A stretch of 64,000 bases of DNA from NCBI GenBank assembly GCA_002189035.1, contig NEEC01000009.1:434001-498000 (forward strand), in the 5' to 3' direction. The notes under the pieces were generated by a model. That model was not told the DNA's origin. It ran no database searches and saw only the letters and a program-made list of their open reading frames with translations. Numbering within the stretch: position 1 is the first letter of the stretch; each line of letters starts with the position of its first letter. A program made the position numbers and the translations under genes. The DNA comes from Utricularia gibba. Taxonomy: Eukaryota; Plantae; Magnoliophyta. Positions 2,840-60,800 of this stretch are shown in pieces.

Positions 2840-4381
2840 GGAGCTGTTGGTAGCCATAGGATGCATCCGAAAATTCACCCATATGGAGCTCTCGGAGAAT
2901 CTGCAGCAAATTGAGTTACATACAAAGCCGTTGGATGTTGAAGAAAAGGCATTCATGGCTGGCTTTCCGGAAAATAGCAAAGCAGATCAAAAACGAAAAT
3001 CAGCCTACAAACCATTTGCTCTACGAATTTCAGCCACCAACTCTCAAACTCAAGGAGAAATACCTCCATGCTGCTACTGCAAGAAGGCCAACTCACATAC
3101 TCCGGAAAACTACTGGTGGAGCCCTACTGCGACATGTGCATTCTACAACCAAAAAGGACATATGGAGAAGGTGTACAGCATATGAAAAGAGGTCATATCT
3201 CAAGTTCACAACCAGCTGATGGGAAAAAAGGGCAACCTCAATATCAATCTCTCCACTGAAGCCATATCAAAGGCTCTAGACAATGTATTCTTTAAAACTA
3301 CTACTAAAAATGAAACTGATGCTCTCTACACTCATGCCGACATACTCACATTAAGAAAACTCACCATACTTACAGCCATAGCAGACAACAAGAAACATTG
3401 GACCTGGTTATTAGACAGTGGTTGCACAAATCATATCATTAATGATTTTTCTACATTTATTGAATATACTCCCTTGACCTCCAAAAATATTCAAATCGCA
3501 GATGGAACACTCATACCAGCCTTGGGGTAGGGTACTGTAAAACTGGAGTCATCAAAAGAGATCATCTACATAAAAGATGTGCTCTTTGTACCTGTAGCAT
3601 CCCATAATCTGCTCAGTTTGGGACAGCTAGTGAGCAAAAATTTCTCCATTCTGTTTGCTAATGACTTATGTATAATCTCTGATTGTGCAGGAAACGAAAT
3701 TATGCGCATACCTATGCTGAATAGGGTATTCTCTATCAACTTTCTGAGAGATAACTCTGAAATAGATTACATATGTCTCAGTGCAAGCTCTAGGGAAAAC
3801 ATGCTGTTGTGGCACAGAAGATATGGACATCACAACCAAATGTCTCTTATGAATATACTCAAGTCTAAGTTGGTGGATGGAATAGAAAACATAGCATCAA
3901 CAAAGGAATGCTGTGAAATCTGCAAGCTGGGAAAACTGAGCAGCTTACCTTTCCAAAAGAGTAGCTGGATCTCTTCAAACCCTCTAGAAATCATTCATTC
4001 GGATGTCTGCGGTCCCATAACTCCTACCACAAAAGGTGGAAACAGATACTTCACATTATTCGTTGATGACTACTCTAAGTTCGTCTGGGTATATTTCCTG
4101 AAAAGTCGAAATGAGTTAATCTCTAAGTTCAAAATATTCAAGGCTGCTGCAAAGAATGAAAGTGGATACAAAATCAAATGTATTCGTTCCGACAATGACA
4201 GGGAATATACACCACATGAACTAAAGCTGTTGTGTGAAGAAAATGAGATAACACATCAATTTACAGCACCATACACACCACAACAAAATGGTGTTAGTGA
4301 AGGACGCAATCAAACAGTGCTAGATATGGCACGATGCTTACTAATAGAGAAGGGAGTATCTAAAGAGTTCTGGAGAGAGGC
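2840..4381 (+). pseudogene. Copia gag C-terminus (two zinc knuckles), protease, GAG-pre-integrase and integrase core
   Basis: CCYCKKANSH...WWSPTATCAFYNQKGH; WLLDSGCTNHI; LWHRRYGH...CEICKLGK; IIHSDVCGP...FVDDYS...IRSDN...TAPYTPQQNGVSEGRN. In-frame stops are present. Confidence 0.93.
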
Positions 4382-5654
4382 TAGAGGTGGGTTCGGTTCG
4401 AACTGAAACCGTCGGTTCTAGGAGATGGATGTCCGTACGGTTCCGGTTCCGGAACCGGAACTGTACGGTTTCGGTTCGGTTTGGCATAATTGTAATCGTG
4501 GAACCGACGGTTCCGACCCGTGTGTGAACCGTACGATTTGGATTAAAAAATTAAAAAAATTATAAAAATTAAAAAAATGTATATTATTTTTTACACTTTT
4601 CTCAGACACCCATATGAAGGAAGTGTATGCGTAAAAAATCTTCTCAAACACCCCTTTCCAGACACACTCATGACAGATGTGGGTGCTTGGAAAATGATCT
4701 CAGGCGCCCTCACGACACACTCTCTTAAACTGTCTCAAATACTCTTTTCCAGACACCCATATAAGAGAATTGAGTGCCTAGAAATGATCATACCCACTCT
4801 TTCTAGACACCCACACAATGCATTGTTTTGTAGATGACGTCCAACTCTATTTCCAGACATCCTCTCGAGGCACCCATATGAGGGAAGTGAGTCACTGGAA
4901 AACTGTCTCAAATACTTCTTCCCAAATACTTATATAGGAGAAGTGGGTGTCTGGAAATGGTCTTACCCACTCTTCCCAAACACTCACTCAAAGCATTATT
5001 TTGTAGGTATTGTCTAACTCTCTTTCCAAGCATCTACATGAGGCAATATGGATGTCTGGAAAATGGTCTAAGCGATAGATGAATATTCTTTATTTATTGA
5101 AATTTTATTTCAATGTTTACTTAACATGTGATTTAATTTTTTTGTAGTATTTAGGATATATTAAATAATTTCATTTTCAAATGTATATTAAAATACTAAT
5201 AATTTAATCATTTATTTCATTTATTTAAGTCACAAATTATATTGATTTTATACTTTATTGAGGTATTTTATCAAGTAATTTAAATTAAGGTCTTTTATAA
5301 ATTAATATAATATATTACATAATATATTTAGTTAAATACAAAAATTAATATTGTTAAATATATTGTTTTATAATATCAAAATAAAAAAAATTAATAATTA
5401 TTAAAAATTTTACTTTAGACATTTGCAATAATTCATATGGGTATCTATAAAACACCTACAAACAGTAATCGCGGTTCCAGTTACGATTCAGTTCGCAAAT
5501 CTCGGTTCCGGTTCAGTTCAAGCTTTTGGGATACGGTTCCGAACCAAAACCGAAACCGTTGCCCATGGCAAACCACGGTTTTTGAATTGACGGTTCGCTG
5601 GAACCATTCGATTCCGAACCGAAACCGTACGGTTTGGAACCGAACCCACCTCTA
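4382..5654. mobile_element. Non-autonomous hAT DNA transposon (1273 bp) inserted in the copia integrase
   Basis: 18-bp perfect TIR TAGAGGTGGGTTCGGTTC / GAACCGAACCCACCTCTA. 8-bp TSD AGAGAGGC (4374-4381) / GGAGAGGC (5655-5662), one mismatch. Dense subterminal GGTTC/GAACC/AAACCG motifs. Removing it restores integrase FWREAVNYVVY. Confidence 0.93.
4590..5068. repeat. Internal array of short hairpin units within the hAT element, with a ~173-bp higher-order duplication
   Basis: Recurring TTCCAGACACCCA...TGGGTGTCTGGAAA motifs. AAACTGTCTCAAATACT recurs at 4727 and 4900 and is followed by collinear diverged sequence. Confidence 0.75.
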
Positions 5655-8579
5655 GGAGAGGCTGTGAACTATGTTGTATACCTGCTGAACCATCTCCCCA
5701 CCAAAGGTATTACTGAGTTTAGAACAATGTATGAACTATGGACTGGAAGGGTTCCAACAGTAGACCACTTGCGGGTGTTTGGCTATATTTGCTTTCGTCT
5801 TATGCCCAAGTCCCTAAGACGAATGCTGGATGAGGAAAGTCACATAGGGGTATTTATAGGCTATAGCTCTACTACAAAAGCATATAGGATATGAGATCCT
5901 ATAGATGGAAAAATGATACTAAGCCAGCATGTGTTATTTGATGAACAACGCGCTTGGAATTGGAAGACTGGAAACTCAAGTACAAAGAATTCATGCACAA
6001 CAAGCTGCGCTGTCTATAACGCCAAGATACCTACAAGGTGGCCTACGCAACCTCCTGACACTCAAAATAATCCTGCTGAGAATGCTGTCTCCCTGAGCAA
6101 CACACCCATCTCTAAAGCGGCTGGAAGCGATAACAACAATCAAAGTATTTTCAGCTTTGTCTTTGAAAATGCAACTCAAGAACATGAAGAAAACGAGATT
6201 GAAATGCAGAAGGATTCTCATGGTCAAGTCAACCCCACAACACCTAATCCAATCAGTCATCTATCAGAACATGGAAATGACGAACCTGAGAACCTCAGAA
6301 ATTCTGGAAGAAAAAACGTAGCTCGAAATCTGGAAGGAGCCTTTGATCAAGAGCATCAAAATGATTCAAGAACTGAAGAAGCTGCACCTATTGAGGATCC
6401 TGTGAACTCAAACTCAATTGGACCAAGAACATTTGAACACGGTCAATCCCCTGATCAATCACCTGATCTAGAGGACAATAATCCAGAATTCAAGACTTAT
6501 CTATCTGAAGAGAACTCTAGAGCAGACTTGAGTGAGACTTGTGAGCCCAACGCCTCGCCAACTCCAGATCTGAGAATATCATAGACCTGTTTAAAATCAT
6601 CAGATACACCTGATGGAACTCCACAAGAAGGCATAGAGGACAATATGAAAAACTCTTCCCTTATATTTTCAGAGACATATGATAACACACTGGTACGCGG
6701 ATTCAAGCCAATCACCTACTTCTATCAAGATAAATGTCTTCTCACTCACTCTGAACCCACTAGCTTGACCTATGGTCTCACAAACTCGAAATGGAGGAAA
6801 GCCATGGAAAGTGAACTTCAAACTATTGAAAACTATCAGACTTGGACACTTGTGGACAGAGTAAAAAATAAGAAACTCATTGGGGTCAAATGGGTGCTAA
6901 GGACGAAGCTAAATTCAGATGGAAGTGTAAACAAACACAAGGCAAGACTAGTAGCTGAAGGCTTTGCTCAAAGGGAAGGCAGAGACTATCATGACACCTT
7001 TGCTCCAGTGGCTAGACTCGATACAATCAAGCTAATAATAGCCCTAGCAGCATGTATGAGATGACATATTTTTCATCTAGATATTAAGTCTTCCTTTCTA
7101 AACGGGACACTCACAGAAGAAATCTACGTTGAACAACCTCTTGGTTTTGCTATTAAGGGAAAGGAAGACAAAGTCTACAAGCTACACAAGGCCTTATACA
7201 GTTTAAAGCAAACAACTCCGAGCATGGTACAGTAGGATAAATGACTATTTTCTGAAACACGGATATCAGCAGAACGAAAATGACATCACACTATATACAC
7301 TGAAAGACAAACACACAGTTAGACAGGTTATAGTGTCACTATACGTTGATGACATCCGAATCACCGGCGATAATGAAGATCTAGTCAATCATGAAAAGGA
7401 ACAGCTTAAACATGCCTTCGAACTCCCCGATTTGGGCCTGATGACTTATTTCCTGGGACTGGAAGGCAATCAAACCGACTCAAAAACTGTGATCTCTCAA
7501 CACAAATATACTCTGAACCTCATCAACAGATATGGCATGGCAACCTCCAGAAAATCTTCAGTACCTATTACACTAGAAATCAAGAATCAACTCTATGAAT
7601 TTGGGCAAAAGATTGATGGAAATTTATATCGAAAGCTTATAGGATCACTATTATACTTGACGGCCACAAGACCGGATATCACCTTTGCTGTCAATCTTCT
7701 ATTTCAATTCATGATGGAACTAACGACCACACATCTAGATGCAGGAAAACAAAATCTTAAGTATCTGAATGACACAAAGGAATTTAGGCTCATCTACAAG
7801 AGAGGTATGCATCCATGCCTACAAGTCTATTGTGATAACAATTATACAGGTGACAATAAGGACATGAAGTCTACAAGCGAATATCTCCTTATGATAAGTG
7901 GATGTACGTTTGCATGGAACAGCAAGAAACAATCTATAGTGGCACAATCATCATCCGAAGCTGAATATATGGTTGATGTTGCTGCCTCTAATCATACTAT
8001 ATGGATTCAAAAACTGTTAGAGGATCTGGATATTCACATAGACAAGACTATCACATTATTTCTGGACAACAAATCAGTTATTGCTATGGGAACAATCCAA
8101 CCTATTTTGGAAGAACTAAGCATATTCAAATAAAATATCATGTGGTAAGGAACTACATCAAGGAGAAACTCATCAAGCTCAAACATATCTCATATGAAAG
8201 GCAGGTGGTGGACATCTTGACAAAACTACTGCATCTCTAGCAATTTATTCAACTACGTGACAAACTAGAGTTGATACCTCTGTTATCGACTCCGGATAAA
8301 TCTGATGAAGCTAGACCTAATTTGAGCATTTCAGGTTTGAAGAATTCAAAGGGGAATGGAATCGCCTCTTATCCTGAAAATTTGACTAGTGAAAACCTAA
8401 TTCACGGGAGAAGAGAAGAAAATTTAGCCAGAGAAAGCAGTGAAATACCAGCCCAAGATCTTTCGAGTTTGAACGACCTGTCTCATCATGAGGGGCTGCT
8501 GAATTTCCATGAAATGCATGATGAAGCAGGTCACCGGGGAACGTGGAGAAATGAATGGGAAAGTGTCCCGGGAACCTGA
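5655..8579 (+). pseudogene. Copia integrase C-terminus, reverse transcriptase and RNase H (disrupted)
   Basis: LRVFG...FIGYSSTTKAYRI; WRKAMESE...KWVLRTKLNSDGSVNKHKARLVAEGFAQREG.DY.DTFAPVARLDTI; SLYVDDI; YRKLIGSLLYLTATRPDITFAV; AWNSKKQSIVAQSSSEAEY; RTKHIQIKYH. Several stops and frameshifts. Confidence 0.95.
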
Positions 8580-37004: not shown

Positions 37005-38601
37005 ATGCTGAGAACGGAAAATGGAGAAGAAGAAGTTGTCAGCAAACATAGAACCAGTCACCCCGAGGTACTGAAACCAAAGTTTACAAGCTTGTGATTT
37101 CTTCTGCTCAGGCCTTGATTTCAATCTCCTTCAGGAAAGTGATGAGTTGAAGCACAACAGAGACATGGGGAAGCTGGGGGAATGGAGGTGTCCCGAGTTG
37201 GAGCTGCTGAATCAAGAATTGAGTAAGCTAAAGCTGGATATGGCTACAGTTATGGAAGAAAAGAGGATAGCAGAGGGTGAAAGAATATCGTCATTGCTGA
37301 AAATAGAGTCTTGTTTGAGTTCTGTTGAAGTTCTGACTGGGGAGATTGAGGAGATTAATGAAGAGCAGGTACTGGTTGAGTTGGCAAAAATTGAAGCTGT
37401 AAGAGAACATGAGCAGATTGAGGGTCAGAGGAGAAGGGATGCTGCGAGGTACTCTGCTGCGATTGGGGAAACTCGGAAGAAGATACTGAGAATGGTTCAA
37501 CAGATGACGGGAGGTAGTGGGAAGCAACAGATGCTGGAAGCTGCAATGGCGGATATCAGTATGTTGCAGAATGAACTTGTAGGGGTCAGGGGGAGGCAGG
37601 AAGTGGGCACACTGGAATTGGATTCGAAGATGGCAGAAGATGTGGAGGCAGCAAAGAAGCAGCTTGCTGCAGTTACAGAAGAAAAAGTTCAGTATATTGC
37701 TTCTGTGGATGCTTTAAGGCAAGAACTGGACGAGGTTCCTAAGGAGAGGGCAAGGACAAGGAAGAAGGAAGAGAATACAGAGATGAAGATTCAGAATCTC
37801 ACGGAAAAGCTTCTGAGTGCAAACATAAGGCTAGAAACAGCATCTGCAGCAGAAGCGAAAACTACATCAGTCCTCTCAAACCTTTGGCTCTCTCATAAGC
37901 AAATGAAATCTAAAGCAGAAAAGGCGGAGGAGGACTGTTCAAGGATAAATGAAGAAACCAAAAGCATCCAACACGAAATTCAGAGAATTGAAAGTGAAGT
38001 AGAACTGGGAGGTGAATTATTACAGTTTGCATTGCGAGAATTGCAGGAAGTCAAGTCATCCGAAGCCAAAGCTCTTGATGATCTAGAAGTGCTCTCCAAG
38101 AAGGCTGCAAGAAACAGAGCTTCGCTTCATAAGACAGCAATAACTATTTCCAAGTTCGAATATGATTACCTGAAGATGCGAGCAGCTGAGGCTGTAGTAA
38201 TAGCAAATGAGAAAGTTGCTGCAGCCAAGGCTTGGGTTGTAGCTTTGAAGGCTAGTGAAAAGGAAATTCAGTTGAAAACGGAATCCCTCCGTGGAGAAAC
38301 AAAACAGCTTAGAATGGATAATGAAAGTGAGGATGATAATGAACTGACAAACACAAAAAGTGCCTTTGCAGATGAATTGGTGAAGTGGGAGCAAAGAATA
38401 GAACCTGTAAGAAACAAGCTGAGGGCATCAAGCAAAGAAACGAGCAGAAGCATCAAAATGATACCAAGGCACACTAAGGGAAAAGGATCAACTTCCTTTG
38501 CAGTAACAAGAAGAGCAAAACTGATGCCAAACCTAGGAAGAGTCTTCAGGGGAAAGAGCGTCCTGAGACGTCTGCAAAATACTGTCAAGACAATTCAATA
38601 G
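37005..38601 (+). CDS. PMI2: WEB-family coiled-coil protein, PLASTID MOVEMENT IMPAIRED 2-like; probable join(37005-37067, 37135-38601)
   Basis: QELSKLKLDMATVMEEK...NEEQVLVELAKIEA...TISKFEYDYL...ANEKVAAAKAWVVALKASEKEI. Exon 1 is inferred from a phase-0 67-nt GT-AG intron and is less certain. Confidence 0.8.
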
Positions 38602-38984: not shown

Positions 38985-40615
38985 TCAAGAATCCCGTAGA
39001 ACAGTAGTTCCATTGGTCATCATCTCATGATGAGAAGGCAAAACAGGCGCAGTAGGCTGAGCTTTGTAAATTTGACTGTATGAAATATCATCATCAAATC
39101 CAACACCTGGGGCTACAGAGACAGCTACAGCGGGTAGATATGGCTCGGGGGAAATCAGCGGCTCAAGCGGCTGCAAGACTGGTAGAGCCTGATCTAAAGG
39201 CATACTAGTCATTTGGTTGGGAATATTCATGTGAATCTCTGTAGCTGCTTCAGTGAATCGAGCTCCAGAAACCACTGGGTTGAATATAGGCCCTGTCTGC
39301 AGATTCACTGGAGGCTGAATTGAAGAAAAGCCTCCTGTATTAGCATCCGTGCAATTGGATGGCATCGAAATGTTATGATACTGAGACTGTGTAAATGGCA
39401 CCAAATATACGGGATACTGGTGATTAAACTGGTAAGGAGGAAGATGTGGATGCGTTGGCATTTGGTATGTAGGATAATAAGGTGAAAATGGAACTCGGGC
39501 CGAGTACTGAGCATAATGAAACGTTCCATGTACTGCCTGTGAATCCGGCTGCATCTTTCCATCTGGAATTTGAGGTAATGGAACTCCAAGAACATGAGCT
39601 GTCTTCTCGAAGGAAACATTTACAGAGGCATCAGAAGCTGAATTTTCTGATGCTTCTACCGGAGGAATCTGATCAACTGGCTCTAGACCTCCAGTTTTCT
39701 GAGCAGCTGAACTTCCAGCGCTATTTTCACTGCAAAGAAAAGGAAAAACATGAGCCAGTAAATTCACCCTATCCAATTCAATGAAGTTGTCACCAAAAGT
39801 CATAATACACTAGAACACGCACTGGGAGATCAAACGAAAAGTCTACAGAGAAAAATTCAAGAAAGAGCATGCGATAAACAACACCTTTCGAGAGAAGCCG
39901 ACGATGGGACCCTGGATTTTCTACCCGGCAAACTAATGCATTTCTCATCGCACTGTGCCTTTCCCATAAACGAAGAGTTGACCATGGACAGCGAGGAACA
40001 AGACGACTCAAACGAAGAACTTGTTTCCAAAGCCACAGGCTCGACGCAAACCTTGCCCTCGGCGTCACCGAGTGCCCCAGTCTCCCCCTCCAGGTCCAAT
40101 TCTGAAGGCTTTGTCATCTTCAACCCAGTATCAGCAAAATGACCCTTGAGCAAACTCTGAGACGCACTAGAAAACCAAGAACCAGATTTCTGTTGTAGCA
40201 GGGCCGCATCCAGTGACTCGGACTCGAACGGTAACAGAAACAGCCTAATCCTTGCTGTGGGCGAGATTCTATCGTGCTCTTCAAGCATGTTAACCACGTC
40301 CTCGTCGGAAATGACGGAGATTAAGGAATCCAGGTCCTCTTTCGGCAACTGATACTTGAGTATAAAAGGGCGGTTCTGGAAGACAACGCGGGCCAAGTGG
40401 GAGTAGAGTGTACCAAATGAGGCAGCGGTAGTGCGTCTATCCACAGCGACTATACGCGTATCGCCACCGGCGTAAAAGAGCGACTTATCATGCGGCCGGG
40501 GAACAATGCGGCCGCCGTAGCTGCACATTAGCCGGATCTTCGACGGTGCGATCGGAGGCAGAGTAGCCAAAACGGCGGGAGCCGCTGGCGCTGCAGACGC
40601 CGGCACATGCTCCAT
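38985..40615 (-). CDS. Octicosapeptide/Phox/Bem1p (PB1) domain protein; join(40615-39885, 39729-38985)
   Basis: KIRLMCSYGGRIVPRPHDKSLFYAGGDTRIVAVDR...LKYQLPKEDLDSLISVISDEDVVNML. Pro/Gln-rich tail with DDISYSQIYKAQP. Spliced length 1476 nt, in frame. Confidence 0.9.
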
Positions 40616-41950: not shown

Positions 41951-42448
41951 TTTCTAATCATTGCTTGGTTTTTAGCTATTATCAAATTCTAAGCATGCTC
42001 ACGTATCGTGTGTGTAGTCCAGCTCGACGTTTCTTACAAGATTCCAGTTCCCCGGACAAATGCATTGTAGCATATGTGTTACTTGAATGTCTCTTGTGAA
42101 TATGCTCACCTCAAGACAAGTGACAGAGGATTCGCTGATTCAGCATCTCCTGTGAGAGTGTGACAAAAGACAAGGCCTCGTAACTCTTTCAACTCCCTGC
42201 TTCTTCTTCTTTTTCTGATAAACTATTTATTTACCTTCACATGTAGACGTAAAAAAAGAAAAAAAAAAAAAACTTACCCAATCATGGAAGACAGTAACTT
42301 TTTGTGTGTGGGAACTAAAATAATGGATTTTGAAGCCTCCCCCACGTCCGTAATGCGTTAATCAGGCGGACAGATTCCACGAGTTGTCGTTGGCTACGTA
42401 TCGTCTTCTAAATGGACAGCAGAGTAAACGGTAGGGCCTGGTTCCCAC

Positions 42449-42456
42449 TATAAATA
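42449..42456 (+). promoter_or_regulatory. TATA box of the MIR157 primary transcript
   Basis: CTATAAATA lies ~125 bp upstream of the hairpin and is followed by an ATCAC initiator-like sequence ~25 nt downstream. Confidence 0.75.
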
Positions 42457-42571
42457 CATGCTTCTGGGAGGGGCTCAAATCACACAGCTCCTTCTTCTAC
42501 TTCTTGCCCTGTAAGTATTTGTTGAATAGGGTGTGTTTTTCTCAGAGATGGCGACGGTGTGAGGTGGTTCC

Positions 42572-42667
42572 GGTGATGCGCTGACAGAAGATAGAGAGCA
42601 CAGATGATGAGAATACATGAAGGACATGTACTTCAATCTTTGTGCTCTCTATGCTTCTGTCATCACC
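42572..42667 (+). ncRNA. MIR157: MIR157 (miR156/157 family) precursor; mature (C)UGACAGAAGAUAGAGAGCAC at 42581-42601, star at 42644-42664
   Basis: Exact miR157 mature sequence, canonical star GCTCTCTATGCTTCTGTCATC, the characteristic ACAGATGATGAG loop start, and a GGTGATG/CATCACC lower stem. Confidence 0.97.
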
Positions 42668-42842
42668 CCTTTACCCTTCACACTGCTGCTGCTGCTGATT
42701 TTCCTCGTGCGCCAAGCTCATGCCTCCTCCACCTCCGACGCCTGCCTGAGCTGCAAGCTCTCGCCACAACTGCAGATTTAGTAAGTTCCAGAAGGTACCA
42801 AACAAACATGGATGTTTTTCTTCTGCTGTTCTTTTGCAGGCA

Positions 42843-42947
42843 GCGTTGATATGACAGAAGAGAGGGACGCAGATGATGGAATGGAAGTACACACAGAATT
42901 GTACCTCCCTCCAGATTCGTGCTCCCTCTTCCTCTGTGTAAATGGCT
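42843..42947 (+). ncRNA. Second, degenerate miR156-family hairpin in tandem with MIR157
   Basis: 5' arm TGACAGAAGAGAGGGACGCA (42852-42871) is miR156 GAGGGAGCAC-type with an inserted C. 3' arm GTGCTCCCTCTTCCTCTGTG. Same AGATGATG loop start; inner stem GGAAGTACA/TGTACCTCC. Confidence 0.75.
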
Positions 42948-44575
42948 CATCTTCCATTCATGCACCGCACTCTGTTGGAGACTCGCTCATCTCTCATTGC
43001 CGACCAGGGCGACCCGAGACCAGGATCCATTAACCATTCTCGGGTTTGGATGAACCACCCGCATTTCAACACCAGTCCTCCATTTTCTCGGGACAAATGA
43101 CTGGACCACCTACAAAAGTGGACAATTTGTAATATTTATATAAAAAAATGATCTATTAATATTTTTTTATCTTAATAGAAAAGGATAAACGATAGAAAAT
43201 CATTTGCTTAATAAACTTTATCATATTTATTCCATAATTAACAATTCGTATTATATTTTTTTAATAATATTAAATACTATGACAATATTAATTTTATTTT
43301 TAACATTTTTCAATATTTTTAATTCGACATATTTTTTGTCTTAAGATAAAAGTGCATGACATCATTGAAAAATCATTTTCGACTTGTATATCATTTTCTT
43401 TCAAATAAAAAATATTTGAGTACGTTATTAGTAAATAACATTACCTTTTAATGGTAAATAACGTTAATATGACATTATTTTGTAAAATTCTTAGTTCATG
43501 TAATACATAAGTTATCGAGGAAAACAAAAAATTGATAACATGGAACATTATAAAAAAAAATGTTTTGAATAGATGTATGTGATTCAATTTTATTCCTTTT
43601 TATACCATACACATATTAAAATATGGCGAATACAAGTGAATTATTTAGAAGGATAGTATGGTACCAAGGAAACAATATTAAGACATTCTTTGATATTAGA
43701 ATATTAGTATGTCTAAATAGATTTTTATTCAATTGTATATAAGGTTTAATATTTTAGAATATAAGTTTGAGTATGTGAATAGTATATATATAATTAGTCA
43801 TTTTCTTTATTTATGTATAACACTCTACATACTCAAAAAATGAATGTGTGAGTAGTATAAACATACAAAGTTTAATATGCGTATATTAATTAATAAAACA
43901 ACGATTTATGTATAAATTTGAATATAAGTGTTTTATATTATACTGTCAAACAACTTTTAAATATCACATGAATGTGACTACAAATTCTTATACAAAAGAT
44001 GTAATCAAAAGTCAAAAAAACTAGAAGTACATAATATAATTTACACTTTAAACTCTTTGAAATTGAAAAAGCATCAAACGATTCAAGCAATTTGAATAAT
44101 CATCAAAATTACCAAAGAATATGAAATTTATAAAATATCAATGGATACGAATGATAGATATCAATATTTTTGATAATTTAGATTGATATAAATGTTAATA
44201 TTTTGAACAATGAATATGATATAAATGTTATATTTATACTTAGATATTTCTAACATTTTTATATCAAAAAATAAAAAAAATTATTGATAAAAAAATATGA
44301 GGAACACCTAAACATTAATCTTAAAGATATAATCCTCCAATTAAATAATAAATAATAGAGTTTAATGCTAACAAAGGTTAACTGGAATCAAATTAGGTAT
44401 AAACAAACTATCTGCCGGCAACTTAAATGGTCTAATAATTAAGTTATATTTAATTACGGGAATATGAAACTGAAATTATAATTAAAAAAAAAAAAGTAAA
44501 GCCGTCCGGTTCTTTTCTGTTCTTCCCTAGGGCTTTTGTTCCAAAATTCCATTGCAGTCCTGGGATTCCGGGGAC

Positions 44576-46395: not shown

Positions 46396-46749
46396 TGGAG
46401 CCCCATCAACCAAGATGCTGCTTTGTTCTGTTTTTTTGTTTGGTTAGTGAAGTCTTCTTTGGATTCTATGACGTTTTTTTAGTTGAAGGTACCAGAAAAA
46501 TGCTAAATTGGTGCTTTTTGTGGGACATAAATATTATATATGAGATACAGATTTCGAGTTTAATATGGAAACTACCGACCCGATTGGTTAGGGCGCCCGA
46601 ACCGGAGATACGAGCAGAGGCGACGAGAGCAGCGGTTTCGGAATCTTTGGGTGGACGGGATCCCGGCCGTCGCGATCGCCGGTGAATCTCCATCGCTGGA
46701 TCTCCTTCTATCTCCCGTGGAGTTGCAAGCAAGTATCAGATCCCGGAAA

Positions 46750-47907
46750 ATGAAGCGGAAGAAGTGGTCGGAGGTGGAGGAACAAACCCTACTATCGAAA
46801 TATTCAGAGCTCCTCGAATCAGGAGTATTGTCGAAGCTGAAGACGAGGGAGAAGAAGTTCAAGCCAATATCCGACCACGTGAATTCGCTACACCATCTTC
46901 TCGATCCGATTTCTTTCCCTTTCAAGTGGACATGGCGGGACGTTTCGATCAAGGTGCAGAACATGCGCCATCAGTATCTGGGTGTGAAGCAGAAGATCAG
47001 AGTTTCCGAGAATGAGTTCAATTGGGCCGATGGGGAGAATCATTGGGAGAATTTCTTGAAGTACAAAGAGGTATTTGGCGACATTGAGCTCTCCGAGTCT
47101 AATACTACGACTGCTGTAAAGGATAAGAAACTTGGGGAAGAAAGCATTATTTCTGATGTTTTAGGATTAGGTTATGGCGTGGAGACAGGAGATGATGTTG
47201 ATGATGACTATGACTATGAGGGTGAAGTTGATGAAGAGGAAGAGGAGGAAGAAGAAGAAGAAGAAGAAGAAGAAGAGGGGATGGATGGTGATCCTGGAGG
47301 AAGTGATGCAGGGGAAAAAGATGCAAACTTGGAATTTTCAGGTTCCAAAGGGAGAAAAAGAAGATTAAGAATGTTGAATCTTGGAAGCAAGGTTTTGGAA
47401 TTGAGAGAAATGATTGTGAGAAGAGAAGAGAAAAGGAGGGAAAGAGAATGGAACAAGCAAGTGAAAGAAATGGCTGTTTCATCAAAAAACAGCAACAGCA
47501 AAGGAGATGAAAGTGAAGAAGAAGATGAAGAAGAAGAAGTGCTCATTGAGATGGAAAAGATGAAATTGCAGCATGCGAAAAGGGAAGCACAGAAGAGGAT
47601 GAGGTTGGAGAAGGAACTAAGCGATGAGAAGAGGAGGAGAATGGATATGGAGCAGAAATTGGAGGAAGAAGACATGGAATGGAAGCAGAGAATGCTGGAA
47701 ATGCAGATTGAACATGAGAAGCAGATGATGCAAATACAAGCTGATTCCTGCCAAGCACAGCTTCAGATCCTTGGCCTGGTAGCTCGGATTGTTTGTCATT
47801 TTTTTGGGTCAGCCAATGAAGCCCTGGGTACACAAGATTTGCAGACGCTAGCTCATCAAGGAGGACTAGGTGATGCTTCCAAGCCTGGTTCCTCTGTGTT
47901 TCAGTAG
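46750..47907 (+). CDS. Trihelix-type (Myb/SANT-like DNA-binding) transcription factor with poly-Glu tract and C-terminal coiled coil, intronless
   Basis: MKRKKWSEVEEQTLLSKYSELL...KWTWRDVSIKVQNMRHQYLGVKQKIR...HWENFLKYKEVFGD; E-rich helix WKQRMLEMQIEHEKQMMQIQA. First in-frame ATG is at 46750. Confidence 0.85.
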   Translation: MKRKKWSEVEEQTLLSKYSELLESGVLSKLKTREKKFKPISDHVNSLHHLLDPISFPFKWTWRDVSIKVQNMRHQYLGVKQKIRVSENEFNWADGENHWENFLKYKEVFGDIELSESNTTTAVKDKKLGEESIISDVLGLGYGVETGDDVDDDYDYEGEVDEEEEEEEEEEEEEEEGMDGDPGGSDAGEKDANLEFSGSKGRKRRLRMLNLGSKVLELREMIVRREEKRREREWNKQVKEMAVSSKNSNSKGDESEEEDEEEEVLIEMEKMKLQHAKREAQKRMRLEKELSDEKRRRMDMEQKLEEEDMEWKQRMLEMQIEHEKQMMQIQADSCQAQLQILGLVARIVCHFFGSANEALGTQDLQTLAHQGGLGDASKPGSSVFQ

Positions 47908-57878: not shown

Positions 57879-60800
57879 ATGGCGCCAATGGCCAGCGCTC
57901 CGACGCTCCGTCGCTGGGTAACCGCCATTTTTGTACTTATTGTTCTCCGACTCACCAGGGTTTCGGCCTCCGTGGAGGAAGTTCGATCACTGCTTGAGTT
58001 CAGGAGGGGTATAAAATCGGATCCCTCCAATGTGGTTTTTTCCAGTTGGGTATTGCCAGGCAACGCATCTGCCTGCCCTGAAACCTTCCATGGTGTTGTC
58101 TGTGAACCGCAAACGGAGTCTGTGGTTTCCATTTCCCTTGACCGCCTAGGACTGGTAGGAGAACTCAAATTCAGTACTCTTACGTCGCTGAAGTTTCTGC
58201 GGAATCTAACCCTTGCTGGGAATGCGTTGAGTGGTCGTCTTGTTCCGTTGATGAGGCTTATGATGTCTCTTGAAGTAATTGATCTATCGGGTAACCAGTT
58301 TTATGGCCCGATTCCTGCCAGCTTTAATGATATTTGGGCCCTGCGTTATGTTAATTTGTCCAACAATTATCTGTCTGGAGGATTCCCTGATGGGATTCGT
58401 AATCTGCAGCAGTTGAAAGTGTTGGATTTGCACTCAAATATGCTAGAAGGCGACATTCGGGAACTCATTCCCCAGCTGAGGAATGTGGAGTACTTGGATT
58501 TGAGTAGCAATAGCTTCTCTGGGTTGATGGAAATGAGTGTGGAGAACGTCTCAAGCTTAGCCAACACCGTGCAGTATGTAAATTTGAGCGGGAATGATCT
58601 GGGAGGGCAACTTTGGGATTCAGATGCAATGAAATTGTTTCGAAACTTGAAGGTTTTGGACTTGGGGAATAACAAGATCACGGGTGAACTTCCAGATTTC
58701 GGGCATTTACCAAATCTCCAAGTGCTGCGTCTTGGACATAATCAACTGTTTGGGCGGCCCCCTTTGGGACTCCTGCAGGGAGCCACCCCGTTGGTGGAAT
58801 TGGATATCAGTGATAATGGATTTTCTGGTGACTTTTTTATTTTTTTTATGTGTTTTTCTTCTTTTCCCTTTGGATTAGACTACATGTTAGTGTTCTCTTG
58901 TTCAATGCGATGATTATGCGGATGCTTGTTCTGAGTTATGGGTGAAATTCTGATTTTTTCTATTCATATTTCAGATACTCTTCCTGAAGTTGGCTCATCC
59001 ACATTGGTTACTCTCAACCTATCGTCGAACTCCATGTCAGGCTCATTACCACGTTCACTGGGGCCTGTGTGGTGGTTGATCTTAGTAGAAATTTGCTAAG
59101 AGGTGACTTGTCTGCTCTCGTGGATTGGAATTCCAACCTGGAAGTTCTGGATTTGAGCTTCAATGACTTTACTGGGAATATTCCCAGTTTAACGCATTTC
59201 TCAAAGCTGACTCAGCTGAGTCTTAGAAATAATTCACTAGGGGGAGCATTGCCTTCGAATTTGGGATCCCTGGAAAAACTCAGTTCAGTTGATTTGAGCT
59301 CGAACACATTTGATGGGCCAATCCCGGAGAGCTTCTTTACTTCCATGACAATTATGCATCTAAACTTGTCTGGGAATCATCTTTCTGGAACCATCCCTCT
59401 TGGTGGCTCGCATGCTACTGAGTTTCTGGCTCTTCCTCCTATTCCGCCCTTGGAGTCACTAGATATTTCAAGAAATGCTTTGACTGGTGGTTTGGCATCT
59501 GAAATTGGCAACTGGCAGAGGCTCAGGTTACTGAATCTTGCTACAAACCGTCTATCTGGATCATTGCCTCCTGAATTAAGCAAGCTCACTCTCTTGGAAT
59601 ATCTGGATTTATCACATAACGACTTTAGTGGTCAAATTCCTGAAAGATTGCCTCAGACTCTCTCTTTCCTAGACATGGCTTACAATAATTTTTCAGGAGT
59701 GGTGCCTGATAGATTAAAAGGTTTCCCTGCTTCTTCGTTCTCACCTGGAAATGACGGACTGGGGCACCACCATTCTTCTCCAACTGGTAATGTTGATGTT
59801 TCAAGCCATGATGTAGATGGAGGATATCATCGCAGTTCTAGATCCAGCATCACAAAAGCTATTATCATTTCATGTACGGCAACTGCTTTGTTGCTTGCCG
59901 TTGTTCTGTTTGCTTATATCAGATCACCAATTCACAATTTCCATCTACGACCCAGCGTCCATGGTCAAAATGTCGATGGAGATGCCAATATTGGGACATT
60001 TGGCAGGCACTCAATTTTTGGTTTTGCTGGTAGTAGCAATGAGCATCCTCCAACTTCCTTAAGCTTTTCCAATGACCATTTACTGACATCAAACTCGAGG
60101 TCATTGTCGGGACCTATGGAGTCTGGCATGGAGACTGTTGAGCATGTTCTGCCTGAGCGAATGGCTGCTGCTGCTGCAGTGAATCGTGGTCAAGTTGACA
60201 ATCAGCCAACAACATCTGGAAGGAAATCTCCTCCAGGATCTCCTAATTTCTTAGGCGTTGAGCAGCCTGCCACGTTGGATGTGTATTCACCTGATCGGTT
60301 AGCTGGTGAACTACTGTTCTTGGACGGCTCACTAAAATTCTCGGTTGAGGAATTATCTCATGCTCCAGCAGAAGTCCTGGGTAGAAGTAGCCATGGCACT
60401 TTGTACAAAGCCACCCTAGATAATGGGCAATTGCTGACTGTGAAGTGGTTGAGGGTTGGCTTGGTGAAGAACAAGAAGGATTTTGCGAAGGAAGTGAGAA
60501 GGATTGGGTCTGTTCAGCATCCAAATTTAGTTCCCTTGCGTGCCTATTACTGGGGACCAAGGGAGCAGGAACGGCTTATTCTAGCAGACTATGTCTTTGG
60601 CGATAGCTTGGCTTTGCATCTCCATGGTAAGATGCCCTCTTGCATACTGTGTGTTAACCTTTAAGACATGTAATCTCAATTCCCTGGTGTGATTCTGCAG
60701 AGACTACCCCTAGGAGGCATGCCCCTCTATCCTTCAACCAAAGATTGAGAATTGCGGTTGATGTTGCTCGTGCACTTTCTGTGTTGCATGATAGAGGACT

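Follow-up and report, generated by a model that had tools for sequence, protein, structure and literature searches.

miR157 is a timer of the juvenile-to-adult switch in plants. Tandem genes of the related MIR156 type are found in rice (MIR156b/c) and in maize (Corngrass1). On tomato chromosome 8 a sub-cluster of six MIR156 hairpins is present (PMC9569937). In the tomato, rice and maize genes the hairpins are arranged head to tail within approximately 1 kb and are thought to be part of one transcript, as is proposed here for a locus of Utricularia gibba. All hairpins of those genes are intact and contain the same or a near-identical miR156, whereas the U. gibba locus combines a miR157-type hairpin (hairpin 1) with a degenerate miR156-type hairpin (hairpin 2). 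To our knowledge, Arabidopsis MIR157a/b/c have no partner hairpin on the same transcript. They share the guide, the adjoining AGATGATG and the upper-stem pattern with hairpin 1, as does the cross-species consensus. Loop-to-base processing is documented for MIR157a-c and for MIR156a of Arabidopsis (Moro et al. 2018, PMC6237749). It needs a double-stranded segment of 15-19 bp above the duplex and a small terminal loop, and MIR157c yields no less miRNA when the part beneath the duplex is deleted (PMC6237749).

A similar pair of hairpins is listed for U. gibba itself. Table S2 of a small-RNA survey (Sci Rep 2021, PMC8333044) contains adjacent miRNA loci at unitig_736:1101798-1101997 and 1102064-1102305, both on the + strand. 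The first locus yields as its major RNA the same 21-mer as hairpin 1, including the unusual 5' C, and at the second a miR156 variant whose position 11 is G predominates (PMC8333044). Strand, 21-mer and the G-at-11 variant directly following it are the same in the locus described here. The two pairs differ in the second guide, which has an intact ...GGGCAC 3' end in unitig_736 but carries an indel near the 3' end in hairpin 2. Furthermore, both hairpins of unitig_736 passed the ShortStack miRNA criteria, whereas the locus described here is not listed. Judged from the listed loci, the locus is probably a paralogue of this expressed tandem pair.

The window (the whole 64 kb stretch of DNA that was analysed) probably corresponds to unitig_899:434001-498000, with hairpin 1 near 476,582, because this placement fits the MIR156 cluster listed at unitig_899:2898407-2907770 (Table S2, PMC8333044). 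None of the 71 miRNA loci in that table is located near unitig_899:476.5 kb, and both hairpins are absent from it. Annotation by exact match does miss hairpin 2, as the original prediction had anticipated. Multi-mapping alone was considered as the cause of this absence and rejected, as the table gives several loci with the same mature sequence. The more likely cause is low expression in the three libraries. Since hairpin 1 is also missing, the absence may reflect the tissues sampled. Searches of the literature with the guide and star strings of hairpin 2 found no paper, and no discussion of miR157 in Utricularia was found in the literature searched. Table S2 also lists many expressed 3'-region variants of the U. 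gibba miR156 family, with guide endings including GUGGGCAU, GUGAGCGC, GCGAGCAC and GGGAGGGCACU; this variety is consistent with a guide 3' end that is generally relaxed or evolves fast in U. gibba.

The features of the locus are compiled in Table 1. Two hairpins of the miR156/157 family are present on the + strand within approximately 1 kb, with guides starting at 42582 and 42852. Guide match, folds and model scores agree with the predicted order of an exact-guide MIR157 hairpin followed by a second family hairpin on the same strand, and the two-hairpin MIR157/MIR156-type locus is real.

Table 1. Positions of the features of the two-hairpin locus in the window.
Feature	Position	Strand	Details and basis
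TATA box	42449..42456	+	TATAAATA; assumed to be the core promoter for the pri-miRNA; TATA[AT]A matches nowhere else in 42000-43136
Hairpin 1, MIR157 precursor	42571..42670	+	exact guide match, covariance-model score, fold
Hairpin 1, guide	42582-42601		
Hairpin 1, star arm	42642-42662		
Hairpin 1, upper stem			15 bp
Hairpin 1, terminal loop			5 nt
Spacer between the hairpins	42664..42851	+	188 nt, 52% GC; GTAAGT at 42781, pyrimidine-tract CAG acceptor ending 42840
Hairpin 2, degenerate, MIR157-derived, miR156-type	42841..42945	+	model R1, Rfam MIR156, predicted pair table
Hairpin 2, guide arm	42852-42872		
Hairpin 2, star arm	42917-42939		
Hairpin 2, upper stem			13-14 bp
Hairpin 2, terminal loop			8 nt
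Presumed region of the transcript 3' end	43131..43215	+	first stretch rich in A/T with hexamers resembling poly(A) signals; inference only

Hairpin 1 is an intact MIR157 precursor. The exact 20-nt guide is of the miR157d type, is located on the 5' arm of the fold-back and has a chance expectation of 0.04 per window. In the predicted fold (-57.9 kcal/mol, z -7.2, no shuffle as good) all 20 of its 20 bases are paired. For the homology searches, metagenome contigs were scanned for miR157, GAGGGA and GAGAGA guides, which gave 120 plant miR156/157 loci. Eighteen distinct MIR157 hairpins of other plants from this set were used to build a covariance model (R1). R1 scores hairpin 1 with 80 bits (E 3.5e-19). 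The Rfam MIR156 model (RF00073), which rests on miR156-type seeds whereas R1 rests on MIR157 hairpins, gives 41.2 bits (E 1.6e-6). This value is below the gathering threshold of 62 bits, and a scan of the window with Rfam at this curated cut-off yields no MIR156 match. The miRNA would be released from hairpin 1 by DCL1 cutting from the loop to the base, and miR157 would then repress its SPL transcription factor targets.

The guide arm of hairpin 2 begins 189 nt beyond the star of hairpin 1. As predicted, its bases 1-16 are identical to those of the known GAGGGA variant of miR156 (vvi-miR156a), and they are followed by AGATGATG as in hairpin 1. The canonical guide is present on the 5' arm only in part, as 16 contiguous bases and then an indel. 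A fold-back had been proposed at 42843-42947, and it forms with a predicted energy of -39.5 kcal/mol (z -1.97). The hairpin still forms when the whole stretch 42480-43150 is folded. Its scores are 18.9 bits with the Rfam MIR156 model, again below the 62-bit threshold, and 23.3 bits with R1 (E 8e-4). R1 has only three matches at E values up to 10 on both strands of the whole 64 kb, namely hairpin 1, the antisense of hairpin 1 (52.7 bits) and hairpin 2. Hairpin 2 is therefore a true but degraded member of the miR156/157 family.

The degradation is visible in the predicted duplex. Guide nucleotides 1, 2, 8 and 17 of hairpin 2 are unpaired, with asymmetric loops at 8 and 17. Thus, 16 of 20 guide positions are paired, compared with a minimum of 18 among 24 reference MIR157 hairpins. 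The plant-miRNA criteria of Axtell and Meyers (2018) reportedly allow up to five mismatched duplex positions, up to three of them in asymmetric bulges. By this measure hairpin 2 is a borderline case. The criteria are also said to ask for precise miRNA/miRNA* reads in small-RNA libraries.

The original prediction took the loop start common to both hairpins as a sign of tandem duplication. This is not supported. Of 27 distinct MIR157 hairpins from unrelated plants (metagenome-derived set), 15 have AGATGATG directly after the guide; none of the sampled hairpins of the GAGAGA or GAGGGA type has it there. Because it is common in the former and absent from the latter, it points to MIR157 ancestry. 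By this comparison, the shared AGATGATG is a feature of the MIR157 family and no mark of a recent local duplication. The cross-species MIR157 alignment shows a common pattern, consisting of the GGTGAT lower stem, the guide, AGATGATG followed by ATGCA, the loop, TGCATCTCACTCC, TTTGTGCTCTCTA and the star end CTGTCATCACC. One of the metagenome loci (L047) appears to be Arabidopsis MIR157a. On the 3' strand of the upper stem, hairpin 2 (CCTCCCTCC) is nearer to the consensus CTCACTCC than hairpin 1 (CTTCAATC). With AGATGATG and CCTCCCTCC retained, hairpin 2 is therefore derived from a MIR157-type hairpin and is not a recent copy of hairpin 1.

The GAGGGA variant itself belongs to a different precursor lineage. 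Presumably ptc-miR156k is this variant too. Table 1 of PMC2831844 gives the variant under the name vvi-MIR156A. Its loci have an intact GCAC 3' end, which hairpin 2 lacks, and the GAGGGA loci sampled run on with AACCCTGT after the guide. An origin of hairpin 2 from the vvi-MIR156a-type lineage is ruled out, as AGATGATG and not AACCCTGT comes after its guide. The two-hairpin arrangement is probably old, because AGATGATG is family-wide, the upper stem of hairpin 2 is nearer to the consensus, and a similar pair is expressed on another contig.

Two classes of changes distinguish the duplex of hairpin 2 from that of hairpin 1. Guide positions 11 and 14 form U-A and A-U pairs in hairpin 1 and G-C pairs in hairpin 2. 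Both arms changed in step at these positions, which indicates selection for pairing after the hairpins diverged. As the star arm carries a complementary change for each of the two guide changes, hairpin 2 formerly functioned as a hairpin of the miR156 type. The other changes are uncompensated. The star arm is altered at its 3' end, as the original prediction had noted; CTGTCATC is replaced by CTGTGTAA, and guide nucleotides 1 and 2 are unpaired as a result. A T-to-C change in the star breaks the pair at guide nucleotide 8, and the GGTGAT/ATCACC lower stem is gone. Compensated pairs first and uncompensated lesions later give a readable order of events. Hairpin 2 would accordingly have descended from a MIR157-type hairpin, served for a time as a working miR156-type hairpin and then accumulated damage (the indel at 17, mismatched bases at 1, 2 and 8, a lost lower stem), while the loop-proximal stem used by DCL1 would have been kept.

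At guide position 17 a C insertion had been proposed. The indel of 1 nt is present, but an insertion is only one of two readings, as a deletion of 1 nt (G17 lost, together with A19G) fits equally well. Measured to AGATGATG, the guide arm lacks 1 nt relative to hairpin 1, and in the alignments by MAFFT and by R1 the indel appears as a lost G17 together with A19G. The fold of minimum energy has C17 in a bulge. With one G restored in silico, the predicted energy falls from -39.5 to -45.4 kcal/mol, and guide positions 9-20 are paired without a break. The single base at the indel therefore carries much of the verdict on hairpin 2.

The claim that both hairpins are located behind one TATA box is borne out. 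The TATA[AT]A search of 42000-43136 found no second TATA box in the spacer or elsewhere, and no poly(A)-like signal follows the TATA box before 43131. Because of this single TATA box at 42449 and the late poly(A)-like signal, co-transcription of both hairpins would be the simplest reading of the sequence. Transcription would start approximately 30 nt downstream of the TATA box. Exact-product look-ups of short ORFs across the pri-miRNA region gave no match. Perfect GTAAGT donor-like sites are present at 42511 and 42781, and a strong pyrimidine-tract CAG acceptor is present at 42840, just before hairpin 2. Splicing at such sites would imply introns of 35, 59-60 or 329 nt. Splicing from 42511 to 42840 would place hairpin 1 inside the intron, whereas an intron from 42781 to 42840 would have only 59-60 nt.

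In the preferred reading, hairpin 2 is co-transcribed with hairpin 1 in a paralogous two-hairpin gene, as a partner that is weak or decaying and not as a new regulator. We assign this reading a probability of about 60%. Most likely, the locus is an unannotated copy of the expressed pair listed for another part of the genome and reflects ordinary birth and decay of microRNA genes. Nothing was found that favours the ideas of a novel isomiR or of a processing modulator over decay.

It is rather unlikely that hairpin 2 is still a working miRNA gene. In that case, DCL1 would cut from the loop and release a 20-21-nt RNA with a 5' U, the miR156 seed and a changed 3' end, which would be loaded into AGO1 and repress SPL genes, possibly with an altered target preference. 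The hairpin structure is consistent with this. In the predicted folds both hairpins have a structured segment above the duplex and a small loop. The predicted upper stems of the 24 reference MIR157 hairpins have 8-22 bp and their loops mostly 4-11 nt (three have 25-32 nt), and upper stem and loop of both hairpins are within this range (Table 1). The loss of the lower stem is not disqualifying, because this part is dispensable in MIR157c (PMC6237749) and the upper-stem determinant is retained. The intact upper stem, the kept seed and an open 5' end, which would favour loading of the guide strand, are compatible with continued processing in the predicted structure. The two compensated pairs additionally attest that the hairpin was once under selection. 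Several miR156 variants altered in the 3' region are expressed in U. gibba, and so is the second hairpin of the unitig_736 pair (PMC8333044). Against a working gene stand the absence of hairpin 2 from the 71 published loci, its R1 score of 23 bits versus 80 for hairpin 1, and the four unpaired guide positions, which exceed those of any of the 24 references.

Pairing with targets is also ambiguous. The sequence of the canonical SPL target site was taken from PMC3727082. Positions 1-16 of the hairpin 2 guide pair with this site, including one G:U pair, and any mismatches are confined to positions 17-20, which is in line with a functional guide. These four positions, however, are mismatched or need a bulge. 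Four 3' mismatches or a bulge are at the edge of the usual plant targeting rules.

Hairpin 2 might yield no useful small RNA but act in cis, as a structured element that binds DCL1/HYL1 and raises or lowers processing of hairpin 1. It is probably on the same transcript as hairpin 1, and the DCL1-type loop-proximal stem is retained although the duplex is degraded. Retention of this stem is equally expected from recent decay, however, and an element of this kind is quite improbable. Continued DCL1 cutting of hairpin 2 from the loop, giving an additional SPL-directed isoform with shifted target preference or a cis brake on miR157 output, is unlikely. If true, a fast-evolving carnivorous plant would have gained an extra SPL-directed isoform or a brake on miR157 within the same transcript. 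An assembly error at guide position 17 or a chance fold-back is highly improbable: long-read assemblies such as this one carry residual indels and one single-base indel separates the interrupted from a contiguous duplex, but it lies outside any homopolymer run and its correction would leave the mismatches at 1, 2 and 8 and the lost lower stem, while chance is excluded by the 16-nt exact guide match on the correct arm, the family-specific upper-stem motifs, the E value of 8e-4 and the lack of other R1 matches.

Under the preferred reading of a decaying partner, basic miR156/157 biology is unchanged and the value of the locus is for annotation. Tandem genes of the miR156 family are already known; new is the unannotated copy of a miR157 gene. 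Repeated whole-genome duplication and rapid sequence change are known traits of the U. gibba genome. The locus provides a snapshot of tandem microRNA hairpins that diverge and decay after duplication. On a small scale it also serves as a natural experiment that asks which parts of a hairpin last longest, the upper stem on the one hand or the lower stem and the duplex ends on the other.

The pair appears lineage-restricted as far as seen. Among 31 miR157-type loci scanned from metagenomes, none has a second family guide within 1.2 kb, and among the 120 plant miR156/157 loci from metagenomes no orthologue beyond hairpin 1 was found. The only other tandem among these 120 loci is of the GAGAGA type. 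In this further tandem MIR156 gene (L070:516-682, on a metagenome contig of 1.2 kb) two GAGAGA-type miR156 guides are located 147 nt apart on one strand. The gene order PMI2-then-PB1 is common to the window, Paulownia and Sesamum. No miR156/157 guide was found within 10 kb of PMI2/PB1 in Paulownia and Sesamum, in Buddleja or in the paralogous region of Paulownia, and in three Lamiales none was found upstream of the NST1-like gene. The restriction to this lineage is suggested because neither the 31 miR157-type loci nor these regions contain a corresponding guide.

By the genes around the locus, the window is closest to Lamiales, and the divergence is unusually high. The PMI2/WEMBL-like ORF (37147-38601) has 45-49% identity to its best Lamiales matches, compared with 61% between Olea and Sesamum. 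Its listed start is TTG, and it is a fast-evolving or degenerating copy. The PB1-domain ORF is located at 39857-40615. For the NST1-like ORF (46651-47907) the identity to the best Lamiales matches is 56-58%. The PMI2-like and NST1-like genes are 8 kb apart in the window, whereas in Lamiales genomes they are on one chromosome with gene numbers 25-53 apart. This closeness suggests strong gene loss or compaction in the region. An LRR receptor-kinase-like gene (57879-60664) consists of two ORFs (57879-58913 and 59069-60664) separated by a gap of 155 nt, which may represent an intron, a frameshift or a pseudogene. ORF fragments of a Copia-type integrase and a reverse transcriptase at 3579-8133 are the remnant of a retrotransposon.
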